In this document: piece after piece, positions 7,735 through 52,467 of the stretch
How positions within the stretch are numbered: position 1 is the stretch's first letter
Layout of the letters: every line of letters starts with the position of its first letter
Source of the DNA: Mytilus edulis
Taxonomy: Eukaryota
Assembly: GCF_963676685.1 (NCBI RefSeq)
Contig: NC_092357.1
Span: 60,574,001 to 60,638,000, forward strand
Length of the DNA: 64,000 nucleotides
Direction: 5' to 3'
Made by a program: the position numbers and the translations under genes
The notes under the pieces: generated by a model
The model's database searches: none
What the model saw: only the letters and a program-made list of their open reading frames with translations
What the model was told of the DNA's origin: nothing

Positions 7735-8055
7735 TGCTGGTGGACTGTTAGTCCCCGAGGGTATCACCAGCCCAGTAGCCAGTACTCCGGTACTGGCATG
7801 AAAATACGGATTTTTTTGTGTTATTGAATTTGCTGTTACAAAATATTAAAAATTATTATAAATTAAGGAATGTATCCTTCATGCAAAGCTCTGATTTCTT
7901 TCACGGATTTGGCTATACTTTTTGAAACTTTTGGATTATAGCGCTTCATCTTTTATATAAGCTTTGGATTTTATATATTTTGGCCACGAGCATCACTGAA
8001 GAGACATGTATTGTCGAAATGCGCATCTGGTGCAGAAAAATTGGTACCGTTAATG
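7735..8055 (+). mobile_element. Hammerhead-carrying repeat (putative non-LTR retrozyme), subfamily A
   Basis: Near-identical to 45372-45650; ends in a hammerhead motif. Confidence 0.75.
7990..8033 (+). ncRNA. Minimal type I hammerhead ribozyme, subfamily A, intact
   Basis: gcatca-CTGAAGA-gaca(tgtat)tgtc-GAAA-tgcgca-TC^tggtgc: conserved core, 6-bp stem I, 4-bp stem II and palindromic ATGCGCAT stem III. Predicted cleavage after 8027. Confidence 0.85.
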
Positions 8056-9718
8056 TTATTATAATCAATCTGTTTTCCAAGTGATTTAAAAAATCTGACA
8101 AAAAGCAAAAGCTTGACTGAATAGATCGACGAAACGGAAAGAAGCATTTTTTTAATGTAGAAAATCGTGAATTAAAACTCGTTTTATAGCTAGCTAAACC
8201 TCTCAATGCCTGTGCCCAGTCAAGAATATGACAGTTGTTATCCATTTGTTTGATGTGTTTCAGCTTTTGATTTTACCATTTTATTAGGGATTTTTTTTTT
8301 TTTTTTATTTTCCTCGGAGTATTTTTGTTATTTAATTTTCACTTGTATTACGGTCACATGAACTTCCATTTTACTAACAACGATGTGTAAACAAAACTAA
8401 CAGACAAAATATATCACAAATGAGGGTACAGCAGTCAACATTATGTAATAACCTTAATCCCTATAAAAACAAACAAATATTCACAAGGAAGCACAAAAAG
8501 GCATATAGTCAAAGCACATTAGCAAAAATTTACAATAACCGTTAACATAATGACATGACGTATAAATACAGTGCCATGTTGCAAAAAAACACAAAAAGGC
8601 ATATGTAAAAACACATAAGCAAAACAGAAAGACAAGAATACAAAAATTAGCATAGAACAATGACGAGTTGTATAAGTTCTGAGCCACGTCATATGTTTGA
8701 AAAAGGCATATAGACAATGCAAGATCTTGTGTGAGGCATATGCATACTCCTCTATTTCAATAGTCAGTAAATTTCTTTATAACAAAATGTGCTGGCAATT
8801 TTAATTTTTTATCTTAAAAAAAAGTAAGATAAAAAAAAACGAACTCCGGAGACACTTCAAAACGGAAAGTCCAAAAGCAAACGACAAAATCAAAAGCTCA
8901 ACACAACAAACACATTCCTGACGTGGTACGGGCATTCTCGTATGTAGAAAATGGTGAGTAAATACACCGCACTTTTTAAATAATGTCAAGCGTTATGGGA
9001 GATGCAACTGCAACTGCAACAATTGTGAATTCTAAATTGTTAGTATTTTTGTTTGTTTGAATATTTTCCCTACACGTACCCCGTAATTACAAAATCCATT
9101 TAAATTTAAACTTTTATTGAATACTTGTTACATTTAAGTATTGTGCTTAATTCGACTTTTATGGTTGAGCAACTTTATGGAAATTTAAATTACAAACTTG
9201 ACTTAATAGAACTATTAGTATATAACTTCCTTTTAAATGCTTAAATATCCCATCTGCGAATAATGTGAGATTCATACTTTCAATGGCTTTGTTGTTAAAA
9301 TGCCTTATCAATAACGTACGAGGTAAGAGACAGTATTTTCTCTTTATCTGTTTATTAATTTTATTTGAGTTTTCATTGAAATCTTAAATTTCTCTCTGGT
9401 TGTACGAATGTTAACATTATGTGTGTGTAAAATGATGTCCGTGCATTTGATATATAGCACATTAGCTTTTTTATCATACGGATGTGACGACATTTAAATT
9501 ACCGATAACATTTCCACTAACATGACAATGCATACTATTTGATTCCGTTTGGCCTATGATCTAGAGACCGTTAATACATATAGTGGAACATTTCGAGGCA
9601 AAAATAATTAACCATACAAAATGTATGTCATTCCTTAAGAAAGTTAATGCCTATAAATGATAATGATCTTTCCAATATATAAATGTTTGGCAAAAACTAT
9701 AGTAAAGAGTAACATTAA

Positions 9719-11260: not shown

Positions 11261-14200
11261 ATGGTACGTGTGAATGTTACCTGTCAATCAAATAAACTCA
11301 TCATAGCTGGATAAAATTGTGTATTTTCGCCAGACACGCGTTTAGTCTACAAAAGACTTATAAGTGACACTTAAATTTTTCAACCAAACACTACACTACA
11401 GATTTTTTCGTTAAAGCAAATGCTGAGATCTTCGTGCGAAATGTATCATATTGCAATAGTCAATAACAAAATTAATATACAAAAATGACGAAAATTCTGA
11501 ACTCCAAGGAAAATTCAAAACGGACAGTCTCTAATCAAATGGCAAAAATCAAACGATAAAACACATCAAACGAAGGGACAACTGTCATATTCCTGACTTT
11601 TTTAAATGTAGAAAATGGTGAATTATCACCCGGTTGTTTGTTGAGTTCATTCTGCTCAGTTTTTATTTTGTCATGTTAGTTTTTGCAGATGATTGCGTGT
11701 CTCTTTGGTCGTTATTTTGGTTATGGCGTTATCAGGTTTTTTTTCGACTTATAAGTATAAAACATCTCAGGGTGACAGAAATGCGAACTATACCAACGGG
11801 ACATTCAAAGTTGCTAATAAACTGACAACGACATGGCAAAAACAAAGATAAATACGAAAACAAAATCACAAAATACACAAAGCCACAACATAATATACTA
11901 AAATATGAGCAACACGAACCCCATCAAAGAATACAAGTATTCGTATACAGTTCACAATAAGTCTATTTGCTTTTGTAAGTGGCTTTTGTCTAAACTGCTT
12001 TGTCGTTCGCATGATTCAGTCGAAGCATCCCTTGTTATAATGATATGGGTTTTGTTTTTCTTTCTTTCAAGTCAGTTATTTGAAATAATTTTTTTTAATA
12101 TATAATAGAATTGAGAATGGAAATGGGGAATTTGTCAAAGCGACATCAACCCGACCATAGAGTAGACAACAGCCGTTAACATTTCTCTTGCAGGATGATC
12201 AGACGGCAGATGATTCAGACTTTGTTTCTAGTGTTAGTCTTCGACACTTAAGCAGAGAACTAAAATACAATTACTATGATTGTTATACACAGCATGAAGG
12301 AGGAATGGAATTAATGGACGGACACGCAAAAGTTATTATCAAATATATGGCAGATCAGATACTTCCAGGGAGAATCATAGAAGCCGGTATTAAATTTTTT
12401 TATATAAGAATAGAGAACAGAGTAAAATGACAAAAATATCGAACTTCGGGGAAAATTCAAATCGGAAAGACCCAAATCAAATGGAAAAACCAAAAGCTCA
12501 AACACATCAAACGAATGGATAACAACTGTCAAATGCCTGAATAACCCATATACTTACTTATAGATAACTTAGAACATAAAGCCAATCCCTTTTATTTCGT
12601 GATACTTGTTTCTTTGAGGAAAGTGTGATTTTTTTTCAAGAACATTCAATGTCTGTATAATAACTACTGTTGTAGTTGCTCGTAAATAAACTAGTATATG
12701 CATTTATAAAATCGTAAAACCGTAAACTAAATCGTAATCAATGTAAACAAATACAACCATTGAACTGTCCGATACTTTTCAATAAAACCATCAAGCTTTT
12801 ATTGTGTTATAGATAACAAAATTTACGTTTCCGATTTTGAGTACTTTTTTTACATTAAATATGCATTCAGTAACCAATTGTAATTGAACGAAAGCAAGAT
12901 TAGCTTGTATTAAATTGATATAATAGGTAAAAAATAATTGTCGCAGACATATGCCTGCGTTGAACTTTAATCATGAGTGAACCTATAGTTGGATTTGTTC
13001 CTCTCTATAAAAGGAAGGCGGATTAACCATAGGGGCATTCAAACATTCAAAAAGTAAAAAAAAAAAAAAAACAGAAAAGCCATGTCATTAAAAGAAAAAG
13101 ACCAGACCAACAGACATACACAAGTACGCAACATAGAAAATTAAAGACTGAGCAAAATAATTCGAGTGAAGATTTTCAAAAATAGCATTTTAAACTATAT
13201 GTATTCAAATTATGTAAAAGAAAAAAAGACAAAATCAAAAAAATACTGCACTCCGAGGAAAATTCAAAACGGAAAGTCCCTAATCAAGTAGAGTTTGGAT
13301 GGCAAAATATTTAATGGCATTACTTAAAGAAACCGAAAGAATTTCGAATATCTGGCAAATGTCAAAAACAAGAGGAACGAACATCTTTAAACACTTAATA
13401 CATCGATGATTAAATCCTCAGAACCGTTATTATAGTGAAACAAAGCCAATGATATTAAGACGCAAAGTGTATATGTGTCTTAAAATCTAAATTTGCTACC
13501 AATACGGCATTTAATCCTGATTTTGATATTTCTTTTATCAATGGTCAATTTTACGTAACTTTTCCTTTTTTCCAAGTTCTCACTTATGTCTTTAAACTCG
13601 GATAGATAAAAAAACACGAATATTTCATATTTAATTGGTATTTACTTTACTGGGTTTGTACTTGCATGAGCAGCACGACGCGCTAAAATACTCGGGTTTG
13701 ATCTGCTTACACTCCGAAGCAACTAAGATTACTTCCGGTTGGTTTTTTTTTTTTATCTCTTTAGGAAGCAGAGCAGAAGGAACCATGACACCTTCTCACG
13801 ATGGCTTAGGCTATACACTACAGGCTGACTCTGACTTCATGTATGAAGTCGATACAACTGGCTTCAACACTACTTTTACTCTTGAGGACACAGAACATCC
13901 CGGATTTGTAAATCTATGTATTGATTCGAAAGAACACCTACCCTATATATTTCTTAATTCCGTGCTGGAGAATGAAATTACAAAATTTATGAGACTATCT
14001 CCTTCGAAAATAAAACTTCACCTATCCATAGCGTTTGAAATTCTTATATCTATGATGAAAAACAATATTGAAAACATAGATCATGATATTTTCGAAGGCT
14101 TCGAGACTAGAACAGAAATCATAGGCCCAGCTGTTAGATTAAAGTGTTTTCCTCAAGAAGAAATATTCGAGCCTGAATGCATATTAATGTTAGGCGAAGA

Positions 14201-18323: not shown

Positions 18324-18329
18324 TTAATA

Positions 18330-18570
18330 GTCATTACTGTTTGCAAAAGCATGAATTATTCCACATAATAAGGATGTTCTTATCCCAGACAGAAAACCCA
18401 AGACGTATTGGTCACCACCTTTTGGGAACTTTTGGTCCTCAGTGCTCTCCGACTTTGTAATGCTTTTGGTTTTGGTTTTTAAACTTTCGTCATCCGAGCG
18501 TCACTGGTTGGTCTTGTGTAGACGAAACGCACGTCTGGCGTATTAAATTTTAAACTTGGTACCTTTTGTT
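18330..18570 (+). mobile_element. Hammerhead-carrying repeat, subfamily B, with a mutated core
   Basis: From 18498: gcgtca-CTGGTTG-gtct(tgtgt)agac-GAAA-cgcacg-TC-tggcgt; the CUGAUGA core is disrupted. Confidence 0.7.
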
Positions 18571-18989
18571 AGCTATTATTCGTGCGTTTCTCTGTCCTAT
18601 ATTTTCTCCCATTTATTTGTATTGTAATCCTGTTATGTAAAGTTGTCATATTAATGATATAGTTGTCATTGCCATTAAAGCGAAATGTTTGGCATGCCAG
18701 AAAACCAGGTTCAACCCACCATTTTTCTTAAAATGTCCTGTACCAAGTCAGGAAAATGGCCATTGTTATATTATAGTTCGTTTCTGTGTGTGTTATATTT
18801 TTATGTTGTGTTTCTGTTGTGTCGGAGTTCTCTTATATTTTATTGAGTTTTCCTCAGTCTTAGTTTGTAACCCGTATGTTCTCAATCAATTTATGAATTA
18901 TGATCAGCGGTATACTTCTGTTGCCTTTATTTATTTGCCAAGTTTGTTCTTTTTTTGTTTGTTTGTTTTTTTTTTTGTCTCAGTAGCTT

Positions 18990-19572: not shown

Positions 19573-19724
19573 AAAAGGTTATAGTTAACTATGTTTGTTA
19601 TTATTCTAATTTTATTCTATTTGGGTTTAGTAATGACCATAAAAACAATATTTGAAATTTCACTTCACAATATTTTGTATATACTTTGTTTTCAATAGAA
19701 AGAAATAATATTCCAAAAAATGTT

Positions 19725-22700
19725 TTACAACAGATATATTAATATGGAAACTTTGATTGTCAGAAGACTTATGACCTCTTTCTGTGTATGCGTAACTGCT
19801 CCAGAATCTGAAATATATAAAAACATCTTCAGGTTATATTTATCCAATATATATACAATATTAGGTCAATGTCAGGAAAATATAAACTTTTTTGTATAAG
19901 GGCTAATAAACTGGAGAAGAGACAAGTTCTAATATTGTTTTTATACTGCAACTTAAATTAATACAGTGATAGCTTTTTAAATCATAACACAAATGTCAAA
20001 CTTATTTTCAATGGACCCCTGATTGTACATGTTGAGAAAGTGTCCCATGATGAAAATAACATTATACAACATACAGTCATGTAACTATATTTAGGAAATA
20101 AACTAGTTGCAGTATACTGTAGTTTACTGTATGCTACCATTTGTTAACCTACCATTGCATATTATCCTGAAAGTCTTGAAAGTTTCTCAAATAAAAAATT
20201 GAAATGTTATATAAAACATATTTTGTGTACCTTTTTGTATTGGTTTTGTTTGATGAAATTAGTGTTAAAGACAGAACTGTATAATAGTCTCGGGCTAACT
20301 TATAGAGGAATGATGGGAAAGAAAAGGGTTATACTTAAATATGGACAAATATTACATTATTTATTTTCAAGGTAGGATGTACTTACCAACATTAATAACA
20401 TCAATCCTGCTTGTTGTTGTTGTTAATTGCGTCGTTGTGGCTGTCGAGGCTGTTATTTGGATTTGTGAAGAAGGAAATGAGACGTTGTTTGTTATTGAAA
20501 AGGATGGTTGCACGTAAATCGTTTGAGTTGGCATAATAATGTCAGTAGATTGTATCATATTATTGTTAGTAGATTGTAGTGTATCACTACTCAACAATAC
20601 TGCTAAACTATTTACAGAATATCTGGTAGAAGATGAAGGCATATAACTCCTTTCTGGAGGCGTGTGTTTGCTGGATTTCGATGACACTATACTGTTGGGA
20701 AAAGTTGCCTGATCAAAAGTAATGTAGGTCTGCACGTGATCGCTTAAAGATGGCACTTGATGACCTATTGGCATATTACTGCTGTGGAGGGGTAGCACGT
20801 AACTAGACGAACGATATTCGTAGATAGTTTGGCTCGGTTTTGGTATACCTGATATAGTTGCCTGATGCTGTTCAGAAATGCTAATTGGATGTGGTATTTT
20901 ACTACTATCAGACTGAGACGCCTGGTCACTTAATGAAGGAAAAACAACGACTGTTGTGTGTTCCAATGGATCACTCGATATGGAACTGTCAAGCGAGCTA
21001 CCACGGTCATTAGTTGTATTTTTTAGCTGTGCAACTGATGTGGTTTTTAAATATGATGCGCAAGAATGACAACATTCAACTTGTACGAGATGGCAATCTT
21101 TTGGAGAGTTGGTTACTACATCTGTGCATGACCAGCCGTAAGAAGATACTGGTCCAAAAACATCTCCATACAGACATGATTCTAAAAACAAAATTTTACA
21201 ACAGTAATCATACCTTTTTATAATTACTCAATTGAAGATAATTTTTGAAATCGTATACTTGCATGAATATTTTGTCAATATTTTTTTTTCAAATTTAAAA
21301 CATGTATAAAACATTATGAATACATGAAATACTTGCGTAAGCAAGGATTATATTAAATCTTGATCTGTATACCATTAATTTCGTGTAAAACCAAAACAGA
21401 AATTTCAACTGGAAACAAGTTCATATCAATAGTGACTTTATAATAACTTGCTTACCCTTCCGGAGTACCTAAGATCACCCCCAGTTTTTTTTAGGGGGTT
21501 CGTGTTGCTCAGTCTTTTGTTTCTAAAATGTGTCATGTGTACTTTTATTTCATGTATGTCTTTCTCATGTTTTATCCATGGCGTTGTCAGTTTATTTTCA
21601 TTTTATGAGTATCTTTCGCCCCTCTTTTATTATAATCCCAAAATAAATATAGAGTGCTAATCGGTATATATATTTAGGTGGTAGTAGTTAAACGTTATTC
21701 AAATCTTGTAAATCAATGATAAAACAGATAAATCAAGTTAACAAGCAAAAACCAACCACCGAGGGAATCACAGGAACTCTATGAGCTTAATCGAGTGTTG
21801 CTTGGGTTAATGTTTCTTACTTCTGGATAAACAACAAGAACTCAATTTGTGTCTGGAAACATCCATCGATCGGTGAACAAACGAAGGGACAAAAAAGAAA
21901 ATCAATATATGCTACCATTTATGAGCATATTATGATTTTAGAAATATTTTGTTTGTGTTACTATTATTTACCTCAATAAGTATGTGTAAAGAACATGTCA
22001 AAAGAAGATATGATATGAATGTCAAATTGACAACTGTTCACAAGAAACCAAATACATTTGCAAGTTCATTTTAATCGCATACTCACCGTCTCCTGAAGGT
22101 GCTTTCGAATCCTTGGTGCATATTCCAGACATACACCACTAAAATAGACAGAAACATCATACATAACTAAATTTGAAATAGTTATCAAAGGTACCAGGAT
22201 TATAATGTAATGCGCCAGATGCGCGTTTCGTCTGCATAAGACTCATCAGTGACGCTCAGATCAAAATAGTTATAAAGCCAAACAAATGCAAAGTTGAAAA
22301 GCATTTGTTTAAACTGAATATTATCAAAGGTTAATGGTGGTTATGTAAATGGAATAAAGAGCTGCGCCATGAATGCATTATAGGCCTACCTCAAGAAACA
22401 TTGATAGATATTTGCCTACTCTTTTGGTAGAACTGGTACGATATAAATTTTATTATATCAACTGAATCCAAATTATTCTCACAATAAACTACAAAAAATG
22501 TACTATGTTTGTTTGGTTAATCATGCAATTTGGTCCATTTAACAGAACTATTATCATCTTTCATACAATTGGGAGGTTTGGTAAGATATAAAAAGAGGTT
22601 TTCCTCTCCATTTTTTTTCGGACAATGCCTGAACAAAGTCAGGAAAAGGTCCGTTGTTTTACTCGTTCCGTTGATTAAAATGTTTTGAAAATACCTTTTA

Positions 22701-25700
22701 AATAGATTTTTTTTTTAACTTTTTTGAACTGATGAGTTACCTTGATATTCCCACATAAGGTTCCATCTAATGCTGAAGCTGACCCACATGATGATGAATT
22801 GGCGGGATTTGAGCACCACATTGTCTTGCAAATGGATGTAAAGTCTCCTTGATATAGTTCCTGTGATCAAAATAAGACTGTTTAATAAAGACGTAATTTA
22901 TAATTTTAGGTAAACAAAACATGAGCCAACAAAAATATGAACACGATATCAGATGACGTCTTATGCATTCTAGTTAAAGTAGAACATTCCTGGAATTGGG
23001 GAGAGGTATAGGGGCCATTTCATATGGTGCTATACAATACCCCTAAAATTAACTCTTACATGTATCTCAATGATGTGCATTAAATCAGCGATATGTCACG
23101 GTGCGGCCTAAGACAATGAACAAAAGCCCTACCGCACAATAAGATATTTTCGGACAATATATTTTGACAGTTTAATTATGGCATGATATCTTAAAAAATA
23201 ATATTTTACTATCAAGGTTACAAACGTACAGGTAATATAAACAGGCATTGTTATTAGACCTCATCATGGATTATAATAGGTATACTCAGGAATCGGATTT
23301 TAAATAGTTGTCGTTTGTTGATGTAGTTAATAAGTGTTTCTCGTTTCTCGTTTTTTTAGAAAGATTAGACCGTTGGTTTTCCCCTTTGAATGGTTTGACA
23401 CTAGTCATTATCCGGACACTTTATAGTCTACTGTTCGGTTTCAGCCAAGGCTCCGTGTTGAAGACCGTACTTTGACTTAAAATGGTTAACTTTTACAAAT
23501 CGTGACTTGGATAGAGAGTTGTCTCATTGGCACTCATACCACATCTTCTTATATCTAAATAATCAGATTTTCACTCTGTAAATTGCTTATTTAAATAAAA
23601 AGGAGAAGCGTTTGAATCACATTACAGCTCATTGCTCATTATAAAACTTGTCATTTGGATAAAAGGTTTTGTATGTTGATTTTGTTTCACTTACTCGGCA
23701 CAAAAACGATCCTGCTCCTAAAATACTTTGACATTGGTCGTCCACACCCAATGTAAGTGGTGGCACGCTGCTGGTTGGAACGGGTTCTGTGTAACTAGTT
23801 GTTTCAACATTATTTGTATAAGTTGACGAGGGTTTTGAGGCAGTTGAAGTTTTTAAATGTAATGTACAAGAATGACAACACTTCATATGAATGGCACTGT
23901 TATTACAATATCTAGGAGAATTGTTCATCATGTCTGTACATGTCCAGCCGTTTTTAAATACTGGTCCTATCTTATCTCCATATAAACAGAATTCTATAAG
24001 ATATATTGGCATAATTACGTAAAATTTTGAGTAATGAATAATCATAAATGTGTCCGTATACGACAAAAGAGCAACTCCACTCAAAATGTTTCTTTTGATC
24101 ATTTGCATTTAAAGCAAAAAAAAATTGTTTTTATTTGAACGCCACTGACGAATCCTATGTATGATTAAAGAATTTTTGTATTAGTTTAATGTGTTCCCGT
24201 ACTTGTTTTGTATGCTCTTATCATGCTTATATATATTGCAGTTATCGATTTTTTTGCTAGTGAAAAAGCTGTTTATGTTTATTTTATTGTTAAATTTGTC
24301 TTGGAGGATAGTTGTCTCATATATTATCTCCTTATTTTCATAACTAACTCATAAAATCATAAGTCTTGTATCTTGATTAAGTTTTGAGTTTTTTATTGGT
24401 TTTTTTTTAACTAGTTCGTTTTAATTTTTATCAAAGACACCGATACCATTCTGATAAATTGGAAATGCAGACATTAGTAAATCTGAAAATAAAGGTTCTA
24501 CATTTGTTATATTTACAATATCATTTGAAATTGGAGATGATTCAAAGGTCAGAAGAATAGACTTATTCACGTCACTCACATAACAAAATCTCAACCACCT
24601 ACTTAGACGAGTGAATATTTTTATATAACATATATTTACGACATTTCTTTTTCTCAGCATTATAACGAAGCGGAATTTGTCAAAGTATAGAATTCGAAAA
24701 TTGATTGTGGATTTTTATTAGATAATTTGGAAAACAATATTATGTCATTTCTAGAATGTTTAAGGATTGCAACGGAAGAGTTAATAAGTGCATAAATGCA
24801 TTCTATGCATAAAGTAAAATCACAGAAATACCGAAAACTTTGAGGAAAATTCAAAACGGAATGCATGCATCATTCACAACTCCCTCTCCTTTACAAAATT
24901 GGAAAACAATGGTATAGTATATCGCAGATTTTGAACGAACCACGGAATACTTATCCGAATCATTTGACATCCATTAAGAAAGTGGAACGTTTTGGTTCGA
25001 ATAGATAAACTTACCATCACCTAGAGGTGCATTGATATCTGAGGTACATACTCCTGATATACACCACTAACGAAAAAGTAAATAGTTTAAAAAAAAGAAT
25101 ACAACATAGTACACGGATGCCTCACTCGCACTATCATGTTCTATTTTCAGTGGATGACAAAATTGGGCTCAAGACTCATTTAAATTAGAAAGATCGTGTC
25201 ATAGGAAACATCCGTACTAAATTTCAATTTGATTGGACTCCAATTTCATCAAAAACTCTAAAGCCAGAGACGGACGAACGGACGGGCGAACGGACGGACG
25301 GACGAACGAACGGACGCAAAGACAGAAAACATAAAAGCAATAAATGGGGCATAAAAACACTGTAACAAATTGACAGAAATATTTGATGAATCCAGTTTGT
25401 CAATTGACACTTGGCATTATGACCAGAAGTTTCCAAGTATGCAGGTGAACAGCAATTTTCGTTTTCATTTTTGACATGCAAATTTCATTTTGGAAATTTT
25501 GTAACTACTCTTTATATGTAAACTTGTGTTGTCAGATCGATCTTCGACTGTTTTTCTATTGCAATATGCATCTTTGATAATAATCTGTTAAATGTTGTTT
25601 ACGCAATAACTCCTAAATCCATCGTCTTGATTGTAATTAATAGCGATAACAAAGATTGCGAGTGTCCATTTATGGCTTGTTCTGATTTTATACATTTAAG

Positions 25701-28700
25701 AGGTGTGGAATGAATGCACTGTTAATTAATTTGTGTTCTTAAAATGTAAGGACATTTGGTATCCCAGAAATAAATTTAATTATTTTTACCAGTATTTGTT
25801 TACCGCACTTTGCATGCATTCATTTAAGGTTTATACTTTATTATACTGGATAAGACTGAATTCTAATATGACGTCCGTATTACGCTTTGTAGTCAGAACC
25901 GTGTTCTAATGAGCACAAAACATGTTTGAGACATGCGCACAAGTTTACTGTTTATATAAAAGTTATTTGCATCGTTATCCTATAAAATATATACATTCAA
26001 GTAGCTTACATAAACTTTTATAATATATGTTATATCGAACAACATATATTTATCCTGCTCGTATTTTCTAAACTTATCAAATATGAAATGTAATGCACAG
26101 ACTCCTCGGGGAGGACACGGGAACAGCTACACATTTTTACGGTATTTTCGTACGCTTCGACCTATAAAAATACTGTATTTGTCCTATTAGAATCGAAATA
26201 ATTCCTTCATGTCATGCTCTATGCTTATTTTAACATGGGTAGGCATTATATTTGACCACATTTTACACCTCGCTAACGCTCAGTGTAAAATATCGGCAAA
26301 TATAATGCCTACCCATGTTAAAATGAGCATAGAGCATGACATCTTAAATAGATTGTTTGGTGCGGACTTCCAATAATGCAATTTTATAACTTATTTGAGT
26401 ACAAAAATTAGCTTTATACGTTTAAGGTGGTACCTAACACTACAGGGAGATAACTCTGTAAAGTCAGCTTAACGTTTTAATTACATTGTGTTGTACAAGG
26501 AATATAAAGCTTCTCAATGATCAAAATTGGTGTTTGTCAAATTGCTATATAACCAGTGTATTTTTTCTGACAAAACGGTTGGTTCAAATTTTTTTAAATT
26601 TTTATATTTTTGTTTAAGTGTCAAAGTAAATACTTTGACCAAATTTTATGAAAATTAAACGAGCCAAATTTATTTTAGTGAAAGTGTTGGGTACCACCTT
26701 AAGGTAAAAAAAAAAAAAAAAAAAAAACATTAAGTTAATTTTAATCTGTAAAATACGTAAAATTTTCGTGGAATAGCTTAAATGTCTTAAATGTCTGAAA
26801 CATCATGAATAGTTACCTTGTGATTGCCACATAAAGTTCCGTCTGACGCCGACGCCCTGTAACAGGATGGTGAATTCGATGAACACCACAGTTTTGAACA
26901 TATAGATGAAAAGTTTCCTTTATATAATCCCTAATAAAAATAATAAAAAAAAAAAAAAAATTAATAATTTCAATTGTTTATCTCTTCTGTAATGTCCTAT
27001 ATCTGTGCGTACTATAAATCATTAAACATAAAAAATTAATTTTGAATTTTATAAGTAAAATGCTAATCACTAGATATTTTTTTACAAAACTCATTCATAC
27101 AATAAACGTACTCTGCACATAAAGGATCCAGCTCCTCTTGCACTTTCGCATTGCGCATCTACATCCGACAATTGGATCGGTTTATTCAACTTGTTTCCAG
27201 ATGGAGGAGTGACCAATGAAGTTGTATTTGGCAGCAGATAAGGTGCGCATGAGTCACAACATTCTCTCGGAACCTGTTGACATTTGTCATTATGATTCTT
27301 GGCGATTTCAGAGCAGTTCCAGTCTCGACTAGAAAATATCTTTCCTCTCCGGTCCCCATATAGACAGGAATCTATAAAAGAAACATAGTTTTAAATGGTT
27401 TCACCACCAAAACTTTGACTGTGAACTACAAAATATCTTTGTTTGGCCTTTTTAACTTTTTTGGATTCGAGCGTCACTGATGAGTCTTTTGTAGACGAAA
27501 CGCGCGTCTGGCGTATATATAAAATTTAGTCCTGGTATCTATGATGAGTTTATTTTGCCGTTACAAACACGATATACGCATTCAACAAAAATTTATTGAT
27601 GAATTTGATTCTGTGTACGTATTGCCCACTATCCATTGATACGATACTGGAGAACATTTAGTTTATATTATATACTTTTTATTAGAATTATCCTAATTAA
27701 GAATTGACCTTTGACAGTTTTAGATCGTCCACTAATGCCTTTTTAGAGGGGATACAATTTGCGCTTAAACGATGCCTAATTCATACCTTATCTGCGTGTT
27801 CTATAACATATGATTCTACTTGTTTGACTTTCATCAATATATGTATTATACTATAAAATTATATTTGTATCTTTTCAAGCTTTTGGTCTGTTTGAAACAC
27901 GTGACATGCACGTTGGCAACACATTTAAGCATACGCATTAGTCTTATGGACCTGTGAGAAAGAACATATCGTAAAGTAGTAAATATTTACACAAAAAAAG
28001 TATTTACGTATCGGCTTAACTTTAGAAATATATAATATAGAATAATTTGATCATTTTACCAGATACACTTGAATAATAAAAGAGATGTGTGAAATACAAA
28101 AAGGTGGGTATATTTTGTCTCTTTCTGATTAAATGTGTATGTACTGCCTATCATTCAGGAACAATTACGTGCAAGACCAGGAAGAGTACTGCATTAACAT
28201 GAGATGTTTTCATTTCATTTGCACTTAAACTAAACTTATTATAAATGCTTGTAATTGATGAATTTAACTAAGCAAGCGATTGGGACTAAAAAAAAGACAG
28301 TTTTGCTGTTGGTTCCCTTTTGGTCCCTAATGCGTCTATCTATCTATTAGCCAGATATACTTTATATGTCAAATTAAAGTAAAGGTTTTAATCATTTCAA
28401 AAACTGCATTTTATGATATCATTATAAGTGTACAACTTAAATGATATGTATTATTATCTTATTAGAACTTACTTTTCCCTTTGGGGGCCTTGACATCATA
28501 TACACAACTTCCAGTAACACACCACTAGAAAACAAAGATGTTTCAAAATGTCATATAGATGAAGGTAATTCATTATTGCCATAAGTTCATTTTAATCTAA
28601 CCGAAATGAAACACCGAAGTATCATACATTTTAATATCAGTGAAGTAACAAGCTTTATAATGTCCACTTTAGATGTCAGCAATATCTTTATGATTCTCTA

Positions 28701-28858: not shown

Positions 28859-28889
<31 letters not shown>

Positions 28890-40800: not shown

Positions 40801-43800
40801 AAGTATCGTATGAAAATAACATACTAGTTGTCCGATTAGGTTTTCCTTATTCATCTTCATTCGAAACGTTGTCACCTATTGGGTAAAAACCCTTTAATAT
40901 CTCGAAAAACAATCCTCTTTAATAGAATAGTGTATCATTGATAAGGCATATCAACAAAGAACTTCTGTATACTAAGTTGGGGAAATCCCGCATTGCATAT
41001 AGCATGCGATTGTTGAAAATTTTCACAAAAAAATAGGCGTGTACTACTGTATGCCAGACTTCCGTTGCGATTAAAACCCAGACTTGTGATTTTGGAAATA
41101 TATCGAAACAAGTCAGAAAACTTTTAAACGTTACCTTGATAATTACAACCGTATTAATATCCAGCAAGTAATGCAGCACTCTTATCTTGAAAATGTTTCT
41201 ATGTTGTCTTTGATGAAGAGTAAATGCTCAAAAAAATTTGTTTTCGGGTTCGATACTTTAAATTTCAAATCTACCAACCTTGGAAATGACTATTCCGGCA
41301 AAGTTTATTGCTATACTGTAAGATGTTGTTTGAATATTTGTGTACATGGCATCCATCTGAAAAAAGATGTTTGAAAATATGGACTAATTTTCATTAAATT
41401 CAAAAAATGGAGAGAAAGGGATACGTACAATTATGTATTTATATTTGTACTGACACAAAAGCAACTCCGGAATTGTACTGATTTTTATTGGTTTGCATCT
41501 TCTCTTTATTTCGGGTGACAACTGCTAAACAATCATACACTACTAGTACATGAAAAAAGCTATGAACTTCCGTGCTCCATTCAGATCATCATACTAATGA
41601 CGACAGAAATATACTTTGCACACGGCTTTATACAAATCATCGTAAAAAAAATTGTGACAAATACAACTCAGGTTGTCTATGACTGCAATAAGAAAATCCT
41701 TCGTTTTTCGAAAACTTCATACTTTTGCAAACAGTTGATTTAAAAAATTACCATATTACTGATATCGATGTCAACACTGAAGTGCAGATTAAACATACAA
41801 CATATAACATAAAACATGTACATAAGAGTTTGAAATTTTCTCCAGTCATATACGTTTGATTTATCAGTAGTAACGATAAGCTTACCCCATTAATAATGAA
41901 CGCATAAAACTGTCGAATTGTTATTATTGCTTCTGCATCTTTTTCAACGTGGTTGGATTTCTTGCTTTTGTCATACCAACTGAAAACAAGATTTTTTTTG
42001 TATCTATCTATTTCCTGTGAGTAAAAAAACAGGGGATGTGGTATAATTGCCAACCCTCCACAAGCGACTCTTTATAAAATTTAGAAGCATTGCACATGTT
42101 GTACTACCATCGAAATTGGTCTTTTCCTTTCAAAATTTAAATTTGTTTATAAATGTTCCAATTGACATCCTTCCAATGTCTGACAAAACAATAATATACA
42201 GTGGAAAGTTAGTATCACTGTTTTTTATTCAATTTAATCTTATATTTTTGGTATGTGGGGTATACATGCCGTACAAATTTGCAACACGGGTTCGTGGTCT
42301 TAATAGAGCTTTCTTACAAATTGACGAAAGGTACGTATGCTTGACGAATCGTACGCAAGACTCGTTTTAGGGATCCTTTATTTTGACATATTTAAATAAT
42401 AGTCGTGGAACTTCGGACAATTATCGTGTATGCAACGACACTTATAAAATTGGATTTTTCTTAAGATATATTTATGATTTCGGGACGTACGATAGGTTAG
42501 AATATGATTATTGATACCACCAGGTCGGGGGAGATAACACTACAAAATATTCTACATATAGAGTAGTCAGACGAAAAAAATGCCCCAAGAAGACTAAAAA
42601 CCGGCCCCTCTCCAACTCTTTAATATTACAATGTTGCACTGTTTAACCTAAGAAAATACATTGTCTTTCCCAACAACAACTCAAATACTTCCTTGATTCA
42701 AAATTTGCAACGCTCAAAATAATAAAATGAAAATGAAGAAAAAAAGATGATCTTCATACTATATATGCCATATGCCATATGCTGTTGCTCGTTTCATAAC
42801 GTTTGAATCATCGCCTCTCCCCTGGTAATATTCATTGCCCCCCTAAATGTGTATATATGATACACCGGAGCAATGGACGGTTATTTTAGCGTATAACTGC
42901 GTTTTACCTATAGTCCTGAACATTCATGAAATATTTGCCACTGGACGATAAGTGACAACTTCGCGTCTATCTTCCAAATATGTGTATCATTTTTTAGCAA
43001 ATTTCGATATTCCACTTTGACAATTTGCTGAAAGTGTACTGTAACAAATACAAATAAATGTGAATCTTGTCGTTAAATTTAGACTTACGTACTTCAATAA
43101 TGTCATTGAAATGTTAATCGTGCAACTCGTGCTTAAAAAATTCCCGAGGAAATGTGTGTACTCGTGGTTTACGTAAGTAACGTATCGTACGTAAGTGTAT
43201 TTGACACTATTTTTCTCTGTTTGGTTATATTAAAATCGTGTATTAATTGCGATATTATTATTTTTGAAAAATAAACTAGATTTAAAAAGAATGCTGTTTT
43301 ACTGGATAAAACAACGACTCTTTTAACTGTTATTGTGGAAATGAAATGCGTGCTCCCTTTACGTTCGTTCGTACCTTTCGTCAATTTGTAAGAAAGCTCT
43401 AATATACCAGAATAGTGCATTTTCTGTTAATTTACCAATTGTGGTATGTTGTCCTGGTTCAGTGTAAACTTTTTTTTTTAATCTTAATTTGTATCTTGAT
43501 GATTTTATGAAATTTGAGAATCTAAAGTTGATTTTAAAGAGGTAGACCTAGGTTAAGGGAAATAACGCTTAAAATCATCAGTACGTTTATGCCAACCATT
43601 TTCAAAAACATATTCTAAGCTTCCAGGTTACATAGATTATTTTCAGTCTGTTTCAGGTAAATGCTTAAAATACATTGATGCACTTGACTTTTACAAACGC
43701 TTAACTGATTTAAAGAGTTATCTCCCTGAATCAAGGTCTACCCCCTTAATATCTAGATATTTTTAATATGGAGAAGAGATAATTAACCGAACAAATTCAT

Positions 43801-46800
43801 TAATGCACCCAATGTATATACCTATGAGGTTAATAGATGCTATAACTACTGTTGTTAGATTGACTCAGATTATAATATTACAAGGTAAATATTACCAATG
43901 TTATTTCAACTGATCGGGCGGAGCTTTCGTTTTTAATATGCATAAGGACAGTCTACTTGAGGATGTGTGTGATTAGGATGATTGCCGTTATAATTATTAC
44001 TGATTTCTAATCACCTATCAGTGTCATCAAAGAAATTTAAAAAAAGAATGACTTTTCATAGATGAGTTTATCCTAAAGCACCTATCTGTAGATGAATGGA
44101 CTGGTTTATTATGAGCGAACCGGTTAAACTCCGCCCAGTCAAGTGAAATAAATCGAGTAATAATAGAGAAGAATTATTCTATAATAAAGATCATTCTATA
44201 TTACTTGTAAATTAGAAAACAACTTACTATTTGTATATAGAATAGTCTACCACTATTAGAAGTTCTAGTTGGTAAGATCCTGTGCCACGTTTGTATCGTT
44301 TACGAGAAACACTTTTTAAAGTTGTTTCGGAAATTTCTACAAAAACAAAAAGAAGACTTTAAAGTGTATGTTATATTTGAAACTGCATATTTATTATATG
44401 ATAAAATATTCAATAATTTCATTTTACACGTTTAAACATTAAAGTATATTATAAGATAAAGTTTATAAAATAGCATTATGCTGCACAATGCTTAAACTTC
44501 CCTGATAGTCTGGTAAACGCTTAGTCGCAATTTTGTTTAGGAATATCGGAACAAAATGGACCATTTATTTTCGATTTGTTGTCGTATATACGTCATTCCT
44601 AGTCGTGAATCAAAAACATAATGTTACAGACACTTTAACAGCAGATTACTAATGATATAAATGAGAGTCATCGTGTTCATTACCTCCAAAAAAGTGGTAA
44701 ATGTACATGATAATTTACAATTAGTCTTTTCCTCAATTTTAATCGCTTTTTCTTATCAAGAGGAAATCCATTCAACATTGATGTTTACTAAATTCTCCTC
44801 CTAAATGACAAAACGTATGTTTCACTATCAACTAGATATTCACCTCACAAAAATAGCATAATTTCCAATTTTATAAACTACTATTTTTTTTTACTTTTTG
44901 TTTGGGTTTAACAGTATATGTTATACAAAAACTTCCCATTCTGACATCAAAATTTATAACTAGTAAATAAGTATGGTTAGTTCTTGATAGAGCTTTAAAA
45001 TGGAAGATACATTTCTTTCATATAAGAAATGAATAGCTTTTTGTTTCAAATATCAAATTTATTTAAATAGCAAACTTACCTTTTAGCGAAAGATCATTAA
45101 ATGTTACATTCTGTTTCTTTTCCTTAAAAATGAGAAATTTATTGTATCTTCGTTTGAATTGAAACATTGGTGAATGTTTTTTTTGTGATTGGAGGATATA
45201 TTCCTCTCCTTTTGCATGAAAAACTCCAAACTGGAATAGAATAATAGAGACAATTGATTTTTAATGATTTTGTTAACCAATACCAGTAATTTTGCTTAAT
45301 ATATATATTTAAATATATTATTCTTCTATCACGAGTCAATTGTTCTATTGTAAAATTGTAATATGCATTACAGTACTTCGGTACTGGCATGAAAATACGG
45401 ATTTTTTGTGTTAATAAAATTTGCTGTTATAAAATGATAGAAATTATAATAAATTAAGGAATGTATCTCCCTCGTGCAAAGCTCTGATTTCTTTCACGGA
45501 TTTGGCTATACTTTTTGGACCTTTTGGATTATAGCTCTTCATCTTTTATATAAGCTTTGGATTTCAAATATTTTGGCCACGAGCATCACTGAAGAGACAT
45601 GTATTGTCGAAATGCGCATCTGGTGCAAGAAAATTGGTACCGTTAATTTTATTAAAAAGATGCTGCAAACAATGGTTTAAAATTATATCTATACTATGTT
45701 TATGACATTGACAATTTTGTTAAATATAGGGCATTTGTTTTTTTTAATTTGAGGCCCTAAACAGTGCTTAAATGGAATAAATATTTAAATCGATAATATC
45801 TGATAACCATAAAGATATAATTTAATTTTGGATGTATAGCGTCTTCTGATTGGCTGACGTTATTTTGTTATCAGACCATAGACATAATTTAGTCATGTGA
45901 CAGTGACGTTATCAACGTTTTTTCATGGTTTTCTACGGTTTAAATGGAATTTAGAATTAAATTATAAGAAATGACTGTGCTACGCGCGTTATTCAGTGTG
46001 CACCAAATTTTTTATGTTATTTCTTCATATATATAGACAGAAAAAATTTTACAGTCATTCCTTAAATAAAACAAATCAGCTGTCGAATCCCCCTTGAAAT
46101 TTTCTTGCAAACATGTTAATCTAATGAATGTCCTAGCATCCGCTGTAGAATTGGCTGAGCCGTTTGATGAGAGAAACCTAGATTTGTTTGGGGTTTCTTT
46201 TGTCCTTGCTCTTACCATGCTGATACTACTTGTCCGATCAATCTGCATAACAAATACTGCTCCGTTGAAGTAATCTTGGTAAAATATAGATTCCTGAAAT
46301 TGAAAATTGAAATTATAAATGAACACATTAAGGTTTTTTTTTATCCCAGGCATAGATTACCTTATGCGTATTTGGCGCAACTTTTTGGAATTTTGGATCC
46401 TCAATGCTCTTCAACTTTGTACTTGTTTGGCTATATACATATTTTTGATATGAGCGTCACTGATGAGTCTTATGTAGACGAAACGCGCGTCTGGCGTACT
46501 AAATTATAATCCTGGTACTTTTGATAACTATTAGCAACAAGTTAACATCAGACTCGTATATCATGTAAATGGTTAAACATAATTAATACTGGATTACTAG
46601 TACAGTGAAAACTGTTTAAACCGAACCTCTTCGGGACTTAATATTGTGTTCGGTTTTGGCTGATGTTCGGTTTTACCAGGTTCACAACGCATACAATTTG
46701 ATATGACGGTGCTTTAGAAAATGTTTGGTTTATACAGGGTTTCGGTTTAAGCAGGATTCGGTTTAGCCAGGTTTCACTGTACCTTATTAGATTTTTTTTT

Positions 46801-49800: not shown

Positions 49801-52467
49801 TAATCCCGTTGCTGCATTTCTGCAATGATTAAATGACAGATGTGTTTTTCCAACAGATAAGTTAAGCAATTGCACTAAAGGTCAGTTTTCTTATTGATCA
49901 TATGATCAATTACTATCCGGATGTTTAAGTGGTGATATGTGATACCACCTCTTTATCTTTAGATTGTTTTACATCATTGGGCGTATTAAAAAAATCGTAT
50001 CGAAAGGGTTTAGTTTAAACATATTTATTTATAGTGGATTGGAAAACTTATATTAATCCCTTTCCACTTTGCGGGTGCGAGTGCTGCCTTGTAGCGGCAT
50101 TATCCTACTCTTTTTCGACATCTACATGGGTGTCTTTAACGTGCAAGAGATATGGCTCTCTCTTAACACGGGTCAGCCATTTATCGTCCCCTTCCGACTG
50201 ACTATCATCGTTTCCTCAAGACCATACTCGCAGATGGTGTCAAGGGAGAGCCGAAAATTGAGTTCCTGAAATTTTCATCCCAAACGGTAATCGAACCAGG
50301 AACCTTTGTGTTAGTAGTCCGATGCATTAACCACTACACCACGGCTCTCATTATCGAAAGGGTAATACATAAATAGTGTTATGTTCCTGTAATTGAATTA
50401 TTTCGTCTATCCGTCTGTTGCAAATTTCTGTTATTTATTTCTCAGAAACTTCAAATTAAAACTTCTTCTTTCTTGATCTAAGAATTATTATGTATCTAAT
50501 TGACTGTGGCATGGTCAAATTTACAGGAAATGACATTTGGTGTCCATTCGTTTGATGTGTGTTATCATTTGGTGTTGCCATTTGATTAGCAAATTTTCGT
50601 TTTGAATTTTCCTCGAAGTTCAGTATTTTTGTGATTTCACTTTTTACAGAGTTACATATCAACATTTTAAGAATTGCAAAGTTGCAAGTTTAATTCTATG
50701 ACACCTTTGGCTTTTTATAATTGTATGTAGGGGCAAACAAAATAAATGCTGGTTTTTAATATTATTGATACGAACTACAATTTTACAATCTACAATCTGT
50801 TTGAAGACAAATATCTATTCAAGTTCTTCTATTAGTATTAGACTTTCAGATATAAATAAACTCATCTCAGATACCAGGATTGAAATTGGTATTTGCGCCA
50901 GACTCGCATTTCGTCTACAAAGACTCATCAGTGATGCTCTAATAAAAACAAGTAAAAATTATGCAAAATAATGTGAGAAGTTGAAGATCATTGATAACCA
51001 AAAAATCAAAAAAGTTTTGCCAAATACAGCTAAGGTAATGTATTCTTGAGGTAGAATGGCCTTAGTATTTCAAAAATGTAAAGTTTAGTAAATAGTTAAT
51101 TTTTAATTATGACCATATCAATGATAACTTATGTCAACATTGAAGTGCTGACTACTGGTCTGGTGTTACCCTTGTGGAATATATACAACACCAGCAGTGG
51201 CATGGACTCAGTGGTTGTATGAATAGACTCATCATAGATACCAGGATTGAAATGTTGTATTTGCACAGGACGCACGATTCTTCTACAAAATCCTCATCAT
51301 TGACGATCGAATCAAAACACATTAAAAAGCCCCAATAATATACGAAGTTCAAAAGCATTGAGGACCAAAAAAACCTTGAAGTGTTGCCAAGTACAGCTAA
51401 GGTAATCTATTCCTCCGGAAGATAAGCCTTAGTATTTCAAATATGTAAAGTTTTGTAAACAGTTTTAAAAATTTAATCATGACCATACCAATGATAATCC
51501 ATGTCAACAAAAAAGTGCTAACTCATGTCAACGCTGAAGTGCTGACTGCTTTAAAATCTCCTGTCACTCAGAAACCCACATTTCGACGAGTATGTGCATC
51601 CTTTATCTCCCAGTAAACCTGAAGTTAATACATCCGAAACTAAAAGTCTGATTCCGATATCGATGTTCTCCTTGAAATTCACAAAGTTGAACGACTTCAA
51701 AATAGACGTCTGTTACTAATGCTATGATTTCACTTTAGAAATTGCGATTTTCCCATTTCACAGAATTTAACACCCACTAACCCACCTGACTCCATTAGTG
51801 TATTTCATCTATGAGATGTAAACATCAGCCTGTAGTATCTAATGGGTTTATTTTTGTTTTATGGGTCGTACCATAGATAAATTATTGAACATAAGTTTAA
51901 TTGCTTATTCGTAAGGGACGACATCAAAAGTTCAATGTAGGATAAAAAAAACTTAATTCACATAGTTTTTTCACTTTTCTTATATTTATAGTGTCACAAT
52001 CGGGAACAGGATAAGATGGCAGAGGCAAAATAACCACAAGTGGAATAACTCAGTTGGCATAGGTGATGCATATATTCATTAACGATCACTTAACCATGAA
52101 GGAGTCAAACTTCCAAGGGGATGACTTCAATTTTATCTTTTTGAACGATAAATTAATTCCTTAACAAATTTTATGCAAGACTATCAATAAAATTCTTATA
52201 GAAAATGTATCATGAGAAGAACAAATAATAAAAAAAAACTTGAAAAACACTGAACTCTTTGAAACTGATAATTTAAAAGACAAAAAAAACATATCTAAAA
52301 CTAAAAGCCATACCAAATCAGAGCTCGTCAGAATGGTCGAATTATTTTAGAAATTATTCAAGCTTACCTTTGAACTCAATATCAGCATCCTTTGGAAGTC
52401 TCAGAAAGGAATCTACTTTCGACGTCGATAACATTGTCATAAGTAAAAGTATAAAATGTAAGTCCAT
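19725..52467 (-). CDS. M12B (ADAM/ADAMTS-like) zinc metalloprotease, ~1126 aa, 22 exons: signal peptide, prodomain, catalytic domain, 3x [ADAMTS Cys-rich + PLAC-like], mucin-like stalk, putative GPI signal
   Basis: Exons (all GT-AG, phases match, total 3381 nt): 52368-52467, 47208-47416, 46216-46293, 45080-45230, 44228-44336, 41886-41979, 41279-41356, 40617-40771, 33257-33294, 32476-32581, 31167-31337, 30473-30617, 29465-29584, 28473-28524, 27112-27371, 26817-26930, 25015-25066, 23695-23993, 22741-22860, 22087-22138, 20387-21181, 19725-19807. Motifs: [16 protein letters not shown] signal; furin sites RTKR and RKRYKR; [14 protein letters not shown]; HDHAMLFT; GLAYVGAVC; HELGHSLGASHD; YIMA Met-turn; FSSCS. 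Confidence 0.9.
22212..22255 (-). ncRNA. Hammerhead motif, subfamily B, core intact but stem III mismatched
   Basis: Reverse complement: gcgtca-CTGATGA-gtct(tatgc)agac-GAAA-cgcgca-TC-tggcgc. The C.A mismatch breaks the ACGCGCGT palindrome. Confidence 0.7.
26209..26342. repeat. Near-perfect ~134-bp palindrome (foldback/MITE-like hairpin)
   Basis: atgtcatgctctatgcttattttaacatgggtaggcattatatttg ... caaatataatgcctacccatgttaaaatgagcatagagcatgacat. Confidence 0.85.
26426..26698. mobile_element. Kolobok-like MITE, intact 273 bp
   Basis: TTAA|GGTGGTACC...GGTACCACC|TTAA; same family as 9719-10821. Confidence 0.9.
27471..27514 (+). ncRNA. Minimal type I hammerhead ribozyme, subfamily B, intact
   Basis: gcgtca-CTGATGA-gtct(tttgt)agac-GAAA-cgcgcg-TC^tggcgt; GUC cleavage triplet and palindromic ACGCGCGT stem III. 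Confidence 0.9.
29068..29452. mobile_element. MITE with ~18-bp imperfect TIRs
   Basis: caatagactactttcgag ... ctcgaaaggtgtctattg; it ends ~12 bp from the exon 13 donor. Confidence 0.6.
29711..29917. mobile_element. TA-flanked MITE (Tc1/mariner type)
   Basis: TA|CTGTG...CACAG|TA, interrupting a partial duplicate of protease exon 13. Confidence 0.6.
31875..32380 (-). mobile_element. Interspersed repeat shared with ~18600-18930
   Basis: Spurious ORFs 18689(+) and 31969/32208(-) share the text [20 protein letters not shown]. Confidence 0.7.
32690..32995 (+). mobile_element. Interspersed repeat, probable retroelement 3' end / SINE-like
   Basis: gtgacctaccgaattagactatttaccgg...ctgcttacccttccggagcacctgagatcacccc; copies at ~21448-21625, 30900-31100, 46997-47055 and 60610-60930. 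Confidence 0.7.
35555..35895 (+). mobile_element. Decayed 3' end of a LINE (CR1/L2-type ORF2 C-terminus)
   Basis: Translates with a frameshift as RISAHPL..RIEK...[22 protein letters not shown], matching the RISAHxLxIE...EDExHFxxxC pattern. Confidence 0.6.
36578..36768. repeat. 16-bp tandem repeat, ~12 copies
   Basis: Consensus ggctgtcggactaatg. Confidence 0.85.
36784..37080. repeat. Inverted duplication with ~110-bp arms and a 75-bp spacer
   Basis: 36784-36894 is the reverse complement of 36970-37080 with few mismatches. Confidence 0.9.
38390..39330 (+). mobile_element. HINE-like element with internal ~150-170-bp tandem repeats, nested in the 7-kb TIR element
   Basis: Repeated blocks cctaattcctaaact..gggaccaaaactcccaaaatcaatc..catagatttctatttacttacactaaagtta; GACGACG near the 3' end. 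Confidence 0.6.
43538..43745. mobile_element. Kolobok-like MITE (208 bp)
   Basis: TTAA|AGAGGTAGACC...GGTCTACCCCC|TTAA. Confidence 0.75.
45583..45626 (+). ncRNA. Minimal type I hammerhead ribozyme, subfamily A, intact (within repeat 45372-45650)
   Basis: gcatca-CTGAAGA-gaca(tgtat)tgtc-GAAA-tgcgca-TC^tggtgc; identical to 7990-8033. Confidence 0.85.
46454..46497 (+). ncRNA. Minimal type I hammerhead ribozyme, subfamily B, intact (within repeat ~46340-46530)
   Basis: gcgtca-CTGATGA-gtct(tatgt)agac-GAAA-cgcgcg-TC^tggcgt. Confidence 0.9.
46603..46779. mobile_element. Tc1/mariner (pogo-like) MITE, 177 bp
   Basis: TA|CAGTGAAA...TTTCACTG|TA with internal ttcggttt subrepeats. Confidence 0.8.
48217..48789. 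mobile_element. Kolobok-like MITE (573 bp, TTAA TSD)
   Basis: TTAA|AGTCATAAGAAAC...GTTTCTTATGACT|TTAA; a paralogous empty site gtagccTTAAaaaagaatatt lies at ~49621. Confidence 0.9.
48988..49460. mobile_element. MITE with 17-bp TIRs and a 4-bp TSD (AGAA)
   Basis: agaa|GGTCCAAGACCACAATT...AATTATCGTCTCGGACC|agaa; empty site atcaaaactgg at ~49783. Confidence 0.8.
50010..50351 (-). mobile_element. tRNA-derived SINE, full length, 12-bp TSD
   Basis: Head GAGAGCCGTGGTGTAGTGGTTAA (A box)...GGTTCGATTACC (B box). The central gcacgttaaagacaccc resembles Deu/Nin-type SINE cores. TSD TATCGAAAGGGT at 49998-50009 and 50352-50363. Confidence 0.85.
50855..51550 (-). mobile_element. Tandem dimer (~368-bp period) of the hammerhead-carrying repeat, i.e. 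non-LTR retrozyme architecture
   Basis: actcatc..agataccaggattgaaat at 50860 and 51228; hammerheads at 50895-50937 (core intact) and ~51263-51306 (core decayed). Confidence 0.8.

Follow-up and report, generated by a model that had tools for sequence, protein, structure and literature searches.

We report that the hammerhead ribozyme motifs dispersed over a 64-kb stretch of the Mytilus edulis genome (contig NC_092357.1, positions 60,574,001 to 60,638,000; the window, by which we mean the whole stretch analysed) are most likely genomic copies of the hammerhead retrozymes of Mytilus mussels, non-autonomous retroelements without long terminal repeats (non-LTR). For this reading, including the mechanism proposed in the Discussion, we estimate a probability of about 0.88. 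The features seen here that support it are compensated changes in the ribozyme helices, 3' ends at a fixed point, truncation from the 5' side and an arrangement in head-to-tail arrays. The system has already been described in Mytilus, and what the window contains are fossil copies of it: nearly all are 5'-truncated or decayed insertions and not functioning ribozyme genes. What remains new lies in one hammerhead family (subfamily A), in an apparently fixed priming site, and in the homology of a junction and a structured domain of the repeat with those of a Naiad-type Penelope-like element (PLE).

Type I hammerhead motifs in the window

A first-pass annotation of the window had named 13 hammerhead sites and sorted them into intact, near-intact and decayed copies. 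When each site was re-read from the sequence, type I hammerhead sequence was present at all 13 coordinates, and the three classes and the stated density of about one motif per 5 kb were borne out. The core (CUGANGA, GAAA and UC) is intact and all helices are paired at 7990 and 45583 (subfamily A, plus strand) and at 27471 and 46454 (subfamily B, plus strand), and the cleavage sites predicted for these four copies are right for a cut after GUC or AUC. Both 8-nt palindromes described earlier are present. The near-intact copy at 22212 (minus strand) keeps an exact core with a C.A mismatch in helix III, and that at 50895 (minus strand) has a loop 2 shortened by a deletion of 1 nt and a broken helix III. 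Seven copies are decayed yet recognisable (2301, 2575, 11328 and 51263 on the minus strand; 18498, 24140 and 31599 on the plus strand), each with at least one core change; an exact core is found in 7990, 27471, 45583, 46454 and 22212.

The hammerhead pairing holds across the alignment of the 13 copies, in which 85% of the cells pair, compared with 21-49% for slid partners, and six pairs are altered on both sides. Helices I-III pair and helix I is open-ended, the arrangement of a type I hammerhead. A search of the window for the core pattern gave 7 matches against 1.35 expected, a number reached in none of 100 shuffles; one of the 7, at 36188, is not a hammerhead. Scored against the Rfam model RF00163 with E-value thresholds, the copies at 46454, 27471 and 7990 reach 33.0, 32.5 and 31.2 bits, and a scan of the window at the gathering cut-off (34 bits) returned zero hammerhead matches, the best copies falling just below it. 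Among genomic copies of the B family, 26 score above this cut-off, at 34-42.4 bits, and the top hammerhead matches are on contigs C1-C14. The retrozyme motif nearly equals the Rfam type I consensus. Single-sequence minimum-energy folding did not return the hammerhead shape, which is usual for hammerheads with short helices and is no argument against the fold.

Three lineages and the identity of subfamily B with the published retrozyme

Subfamilies A and B differ, as had been noted, by four compensated base pairs: two U-A/A-U flips in helix II, C-G versus U-A in helix III, and G-C versus A-U in helix I. The catalytic core is identical in the two subfamilies, and every helix difference is compensated.

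In M. galloprovincialis, Cervera & de la Pena 2020 (PMC7229834) reported ~5,000 hammerheads of type I, carried by repeats 350-390 bp in length. Self-cleavage of the cloned repeat, as a construct with a single hammerhead ribozyme (HHR), proceeds at ~0.1 per min, and the element yields abundant circular RNA in gonad and mantle (PMC7229834). We found that the published primers 109D and 109R match the copy at 27471 and its tail exactly, and that the published construct Mg353 closely matches the same copy, with an identical hammerhead and matching flanks. Because of these matches, subfamily B can be identified with the published M. galloprovincialis non-LTR retrozyme, which supports the earlier assignment of the hammerheads to a retrozyme system. 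The repeat length here (354-368 bp) compares with the published 350-390 bp, and GC content is low in both. The two data sets differ in that the window contains truncated dead copies and no tandem master copies, and in that our genome counts are 3-5 times the published ~5,000, a figure from a 2016 draft assembly. Like other metazoan non-LTR retrozymes, the repeats are non-coding and low in GC (38%); identity with the mussel element holds for B only.

The split into A and B, with compensated helices, stands, and B as pooled earlier comprises two lineages, B1 and B2, which brings the number to three. In the two families that the published work names 'HHR A' and 'HHR B', the differences are confined to loops 1 and 2 and the upper part of the helix I stem (PMC7229834), and it is likewise in loop 1, loop 2 and upper helix I that B1 and B2 depart from each other. 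Subfamily A differs from B in its helix I, II and III stems, has its own tail and a 350-nt tandem unit, and is ~69% identical to B over the whole unit. Judged from the text of the paper rather than its figure, A appears to be a third, sister lineage outside the two HHR families described there.

The repeat unit and its copies in the window

For mapping, a genomic dimer served as the first ruler, followed by profiles built from tandem units, and copies were placed by nhmmer. The full unit is ~350-356 nt long, with ~38% GC, and consists of a conserved structured 5' domain, a body, the type I hammerhead and a tail of 34-48 nt. The first-pass annotation had the motifs right and overlooked the larger truncated repeats that enclose them, as well as a fragment without a hammerhead (Table 1). 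Every motif-bearing copy in the window maps to the 3' part of the unit and extends 34-48 nt beyond the cleavage site, with tail end points at +34 (A), +41 (B2) and +47/48 (B1). The 3' end is just as constant at 30 other loci of the genome, where the 5' start lies anywhere from unit position 2 to 322. Within arrays the conserved domain directly follows the tail, and full-length solitary copies begin at that very point.

Retrozyme sequence makes up ~2.5 kb, or 3.9%, of the window, and no locus in it has two intact ribozymes. Copies with intact hammerheads are 90-98% identical to their family profile, and those with decayed hammerheads 81-86%. By this measure hammerhead intactness tracks copy age and reflects youth, not local selection. 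The first-pass annotation had taken the most common repeat of the window to be a self-cleaving mobile RNA under structural selection. Because the copies are 5'-truncated, none has two intact ribozymes and intactness follows age, the window copies themselves are best read as truncated retro-copies and not as such an RNA. Nor is it established that they are the most common repeat: a dispersed repeat of ~115 bp is about as frequent, with at least 8 copies (8228-8339, 11483-11598, 12421-12540, 13232-13287, 24803-24861, 40401-40492, 47759-47888 and 50530-50643), several of which lie a few hundred bases from retrozyme copies.

No frame of at least 120 aa overlaps any window copy. Other than the tandem units, no terminal repeats were seen; neither the primer-binding site (PBS) nor the polypurine tract (PPT) was searched for explicitly. 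A tRNA-like head, or an origin from an RNA polymerase III (Pol III) transcript, was considered, and ARAGORN found no tRNA in the window. The only tandem, at 50854-51523, was not reported by Tandem Repeats Finder.

Table 1. Retrozyme copies and remnants in the window (unit, position in the full repeat unit).
Feature	Coordinates	Strand	Evidence
Heavily decayed B hammerhead and tail remnant	2270..2344	-	core and both helices mutated; below nhmmer threshold
5'-truncated B copy, unit ~156-355; decayed hammerhead 2575-2618	2545..2770	-	nhmmer E 2e-27; 84% identity to family profile
Near-full-length A copy, unit 54-350 plus 34-nt tail; intact hammerhead 7990-8033, predicted cleavage after 8027	7733..8061	+	nhmmer 321 bits; RF00163 31.2 bits; 95% to A profile
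Very short B copy, decayed hammerhead and 3' tail only	11290..11376	-	site reading, unit mapping
5'-truncated B copy, unit ~159-356 plus tail; hammerhead 18498 with core mutations	18328..18578	+	nhmmer E 1e-36; 81% identity
5'-truncated B copy, unit 268-355 plus 41-nt tail; near-intact hammerhead 22212-22255 (C.A in helix III)	22175..22305	-	91.5% identity
Strongly decayed hammerhead remnant	24140..24183	+	site reading; nhmmer finds nothing
5'-truncated B1 copy, unit 283-356 plus 47-nt tail; intact hammerhead 27471-27514, predicted cleavage after 27508	27434..27555	+	exact to published primers 109D, 109R
Decayed B hammerhead remnant	31599..31642	+	site reading
Internal retrozyme fragment, unit 107-250, without hammerhead	41647..41789	-	nhmmer E 3e-24
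5'-truncated A copy, unit 101-350 plus 34-nt tail; intact hammerhead 45583-45626, predicted cleavage after 45620	45371..45654	+	nhmmer 288 bits; 98% to A profile
5'-truncated B2 copy, unit ~170-356 plus 41-nt tail; intact hammerhead 46454-46497, predicted cleavage after 46491	46307..46532	+	RF00163 33.0 bits
Only tandem of the window, 1.7 B1 units, period ~368; hammerheads 50895 (near-intact) and 51263 (core mutations) both damaged	50854..51523	-	units 77% identical; conserved domain 51150-51222

Abundance and arrangement in the genome

Pattern counts over the whole 1.37 Gb genome, with reversed patterns as controls, gave 4,561 matches for the A core, 15,524 for the B core and 24,556 for a generic core, and the reversed-pattern control was 0 in each case. 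The generic count corresponds to about one core-intact motif per 56 kb. With 5 core-intact motifs against 1.15 expected, the window stands at ~4 times the genome mean (Poisson P = 0.006), a modest local enrichment. Arrays of A are many and have an exact period of 350, and arrays of B have periods of 354-368, one sampled B dimer being spaced 399. A type I hammerhead in a head-to-tail unit of 170-400 bp is thus found in genome arrays, and in the window in one array of 1.7 units. Across ~60 retrozyme loci sampled (L001-L060), full-length copies with these hammerheads are non-coding, and of the core-intact motifs that contig C1 carries in its first 5.3 Mb about two thirds are solitary.

The existence of tandem arrays with a ~350-bp period might suggest an ordinary satellite or minisatellite that spreads as DNA, by unequal crossover or through extrachromosomal circles, with the hammerhead as a passenger; newt and other hammerhead repeats were indeed first described as satellites. 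A DNA satellite does not account well for the solitary majority of core-intact motifs on C1, nor for the way in which solitary copies share one 3' end and are variably truncated at the 5' end, down to a 28-nt tail, which is a signature of reverse transcription. Moreover, between lineages with an identity of only ~69% the core does not vary and helix changes are compensated. We consider spread as a satellite very unlikely, and a retrozyme origin of the copies is preferred. The shortest copy is a 28-nt insertion (L091:4589-4618, minus strand) equal to the last 28 nt of the B2 tail but for one base, an extreme 5'-truncated retro-copy. It splits one member of a pair of paralogous repeats in the 3' untranslated region of a Naiad-type element, which is described below.

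It has been proposed for a few conserved amniote hammerheads that they act in mRNA biogenesis, and the four intact motifs of the window lie among Mab-21, Death-domain and leucine-rich-repeat open frames. Domesticated solitary hammerheads could on this model act on host transcripts, for instance by cutting intronic or untranslated stretches of RNA from immune-type genes nearby. However, youth explains the intactness of these copies, which are 90-98% identical to the family profile, and the density of core-intact motifs is only about four times the genome mean, so that a host function for them seems very improbable.

Helix III and the question of monomer or dimer action

The term 'minimal' is used in the literature for PLE hammerheads without non-conserved helix III pairs, and the mussel motif is grouped there with the classical type I HHRs of retrozymes. 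The minimal, PLE-type label given to the motifs by the first-pass annotation does not fit: helix III of the mussel motif consists of two base pairs and a GCGC loop, helix I runs on past an internal loop, and the PLE hammerheads of this genome are different. Minimal PLE hammerheads with 6-nt palindromes (ACAUGU, AGCGCU) were seen at four loci taken around GIY-YIG matches (L061:2599, L065:1862, L071:2683 and L087:2418); those of L061 and L071 lie ~850-930 nt 3' of the GIY-YIG match and are unlike the retrozyme motif. In the mussel motif helix III is not cut to the conserved pair, with loss of the loop 1-loop 2 context, and the motif is not placed in the pseudo-LTR of an element encoding reverse transcriptase (RT) and GIY-YIG. 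Among 9 window frames of at least 120 aa scanned against Pfam, none has an RT or GIY-YIG domain.

The likeness to PLE hammerheads (Cervera & de la Pena 2014; Lunse et al. 2017) is nevertheless real, for both have type I topology and lie close to the 3' end of the retroelement unit, and in both the helix III region is palindromic and could pair from one ribozyme to another. With 858 first-look GIY-YIG candidates in the genome, PLEs are also abundant, and the motifs might be taken as minimal PLE hammerheads in fragments of PLE pseudo-LTRs, with no separate non-autonomous family. Yet PLE motifs have neither the non-conserved pairs of helix III nor loop-loop contacts and sit in pseudo-LTRs of coding elements, whereas the mussel motif has an extra helix III pair and its carrier is a non-coding unit of 350 nt that occurs in arrays. 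None of the window copies adjoins an RT or GIY-YIG frame, helix III has two pairs and a tetraloop where the sampled PLE hammerheads have 6-nt palindromes, and B equals the published retrozyme. There is therefore very little probability that the window motifs are PLE fragments, and we keep to the reading of a separate retrozyme family.

Energy prediction places a double-hammerhead dimer ~11 kcal/mol below two monomers for both A and B2, and the monomer hammerhead is not the predicted minimum-energy fold. Because the prediction favours a domain-swapped double hammerhead, dimer action of the mussel motif is plausible. The earlier statement that such hammerheads cleave efficiently as dimers is not established for the mussel motif, of which the published single-HHR construct cleaves at ~0.1 per min. 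Newt satellite 2 and the axolotl retrozymes are similar to the mussel repeats in having tandem units of ~330-350 nt that carry type I hammerheads, a weak helix III closed off with a palindromic tetraloop, and circular RNA products. In the amphibian motifs dimer dependence is experimental, while in the mussel a single-ribozyme construct cleaves and the preference for the dimer is an energy prediction. Plant LTR retrozymes are likewise non-autonomous retroelements that are cut by hammerheads and circularised. They carry type III hammerheads in LTRs and have circles of ~700 nt, high GC, a PBS and PPT, and 4-bp duplications, none of which was seen in the mussel repeats (for the PBS and PPT, no explicit search was made).

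A junction and structured domain shared with a Naiad-type Penelope-like element

A domain of ~70 nt opens each retrozyme unit. It is the part most conserved between A and B and folds as nested stems, and it is found in the window at 51150-51222 (minus strand) and 7727-7780 (plus strand), and elsewhere at L055:1562-1633, L017:1754-1825 and other sites. An alternative 7-bp pairing of GCUGGUG with CACCAGC would form a pseudoknot. Within the domain, GGGTCGATGCC is close to the Pol III B-box consensus.

We scanned 30 GIY-YIG loci with the retrozyme profiles and obtained one non-trivial match, on the minus strand of locus L091. This locus has a frame of 1,053 aa with an N-terminal GIY-YIG domain, a CDC motif, DKA (a variant of DKG) and YIDD, and a 194-bp pseudo-LTR repeated at 99.5% identity. 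CDC, DKA and YIDD are hallmarks used for Naiad-type PLEs by Craig et al. (PMC8557442). The Naiad clade is reported to be without canonical hammerheads, and no CUGANGA occurs in 10 kb of L091. The end of the pseudo-LTR, where the element body starts, and the next ~85 nt of the 5' untranslated region align with the tail/domain junction of the retrozyme (nhmmer E 7e-6). The outer stem of the shared domain keeps its pairing through four consecutive double changes, and a structure model built from retrozymes alone finds the L091 site, at 27 bits and a rough E of 3.6e-4, as its only match in 108 kb of PLE loci. The junction segment has at least 41 scored genomic copies of 82-100% identity, and because it recurs in this way it belongs to the PLE family of L091. 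Judged from the alignment and the compensatory changes, the end/start junction of the retrozyme and its ~70-nt structured domain are homologous to the junction of this Naiad-type PLE.

Among the PLE hammerheads and 3' ends of the 30 GIY-YIG loci, not one has the retrozyme hammerhead or tail. Apparent matches in L069, L089 and L090 turned out to be inserted retrozyme fragments, and one in L077 is a degenerate A-like motif of unclear origin.

Surroundings of the retrozyme copies

The retrozyme copies lie among immune-type genes. Frames for a Mab-21 nucleotidyltransferase (cGAS-like), a Death domain and leucine-rich repeats were found at 13635-14903 (plus strand), 58544-58951 (minus strand) and 62671-63999 (minus strand), and a long leucine-rich-repeat block extends to base 63999 of 64000. 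A long hairpin at 36837-37027 (plus strand) scores 48 bits against the plant MIR530 model, the cut-off of which is 85 bits, and is probably an inverted-repeat element rather than a MIR530 microRNA; a 16/64-nt tandem array (36566-36769) lies just upstream of it. Two other tandem arrays are unrelated to the hammerhead repeats, one of 30/60 nt at 52804-54362, overlapping the open frame 53726-54199, and one of 134/390 nt at 56521-57332.

Discussion

We propose that the window copies were produced by a retrozyme cycle, parts of which are taken from the literature. Tandem master copies elsewhere in the genome would be transcribed, their hammerheads would excise unit-length RNA, and a host ligase would circularise it. 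The RT of a retroelement would then copy the RNA back into the genome by target-primed reverse transcription, starting at one defined site, and several rounds on a circle would yield arrays. Because the hammerhead-bearing insertions span the cleavage site and end 34-48 nt beyond it, the template must have been either circular RNA closed by ligation or a multimer left uncleaved, and not a linear monomer released by cleavage.

The helper that supplies the RT is probably a PLE, and the Naiad-type family of L091 is a candidate. We tentatively suggest, as an idea with somewhat less than even odds, that the mussel retrozymes, A included, are partners or derivatives of a hammerhead-less Naiad-type PLE and are reverse-transcribed from a fixed site 34-48 nt past the cut on a religated or uncleaved template. 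A related case is that of Xenopus, in a preprint by Li, Clavereau & Pollet 2026 (doi 10.64898/2026.07.22.740005), according to which vertebrate retrozymes derive from PLE pseudo-LTRs. The preprint likewise argues that retrozymes have terminal sequence in common with PLEs and borrow the PLE machinery. The two cases differ in that the PLEs involved in Xenopus are Neptune and Poseidon, and the preprint states that other organisms, invertebrates included, were not examined; in the mussel the shared piece is the end/start junction and 5' structured domain of a Naiad-type PLE.

Several points weigh against our reading. Expression, circularity and cleavage in vivo would rest on the published work (PMC7229834), which concerns B, and we found no published or tested cleavage for subfamily A. 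Around 37 copies there are no target-site duplications of at least 8 nt, and nothing clear was visible by eye at 9 window copies. The B profile was built from three units only, which makes the B identities rough. With regard to the helper, structure models found the shared domain in no other sampled PLE family of the 30 loci, so that one family only has it, and the 3' untranslated region of L091 shows no retrozyme homology beyond the 28-nt insertion of tail sequence. The Naiad-type family is accordingly no more than a candidate helper, and the homology is compatible with descent in either direction.

Taken together, the results re-detect a published retrozyme system in Mytilus and illustrate that dense 'intact ribozymes' can be young dead copies. 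If confirmed genome-wide, the fixed 3' terminus beyond the cleavage site would constrain the form of RNA that is reverse-transcribed. The shared junction and domain bear on the question of which enzyme mobilises animal retrozymes, and if the proposed partnership with a Naiad-type PLE is true, an invertebrate retrozyme would for the first time have a concrete candidate helper and a priming site.

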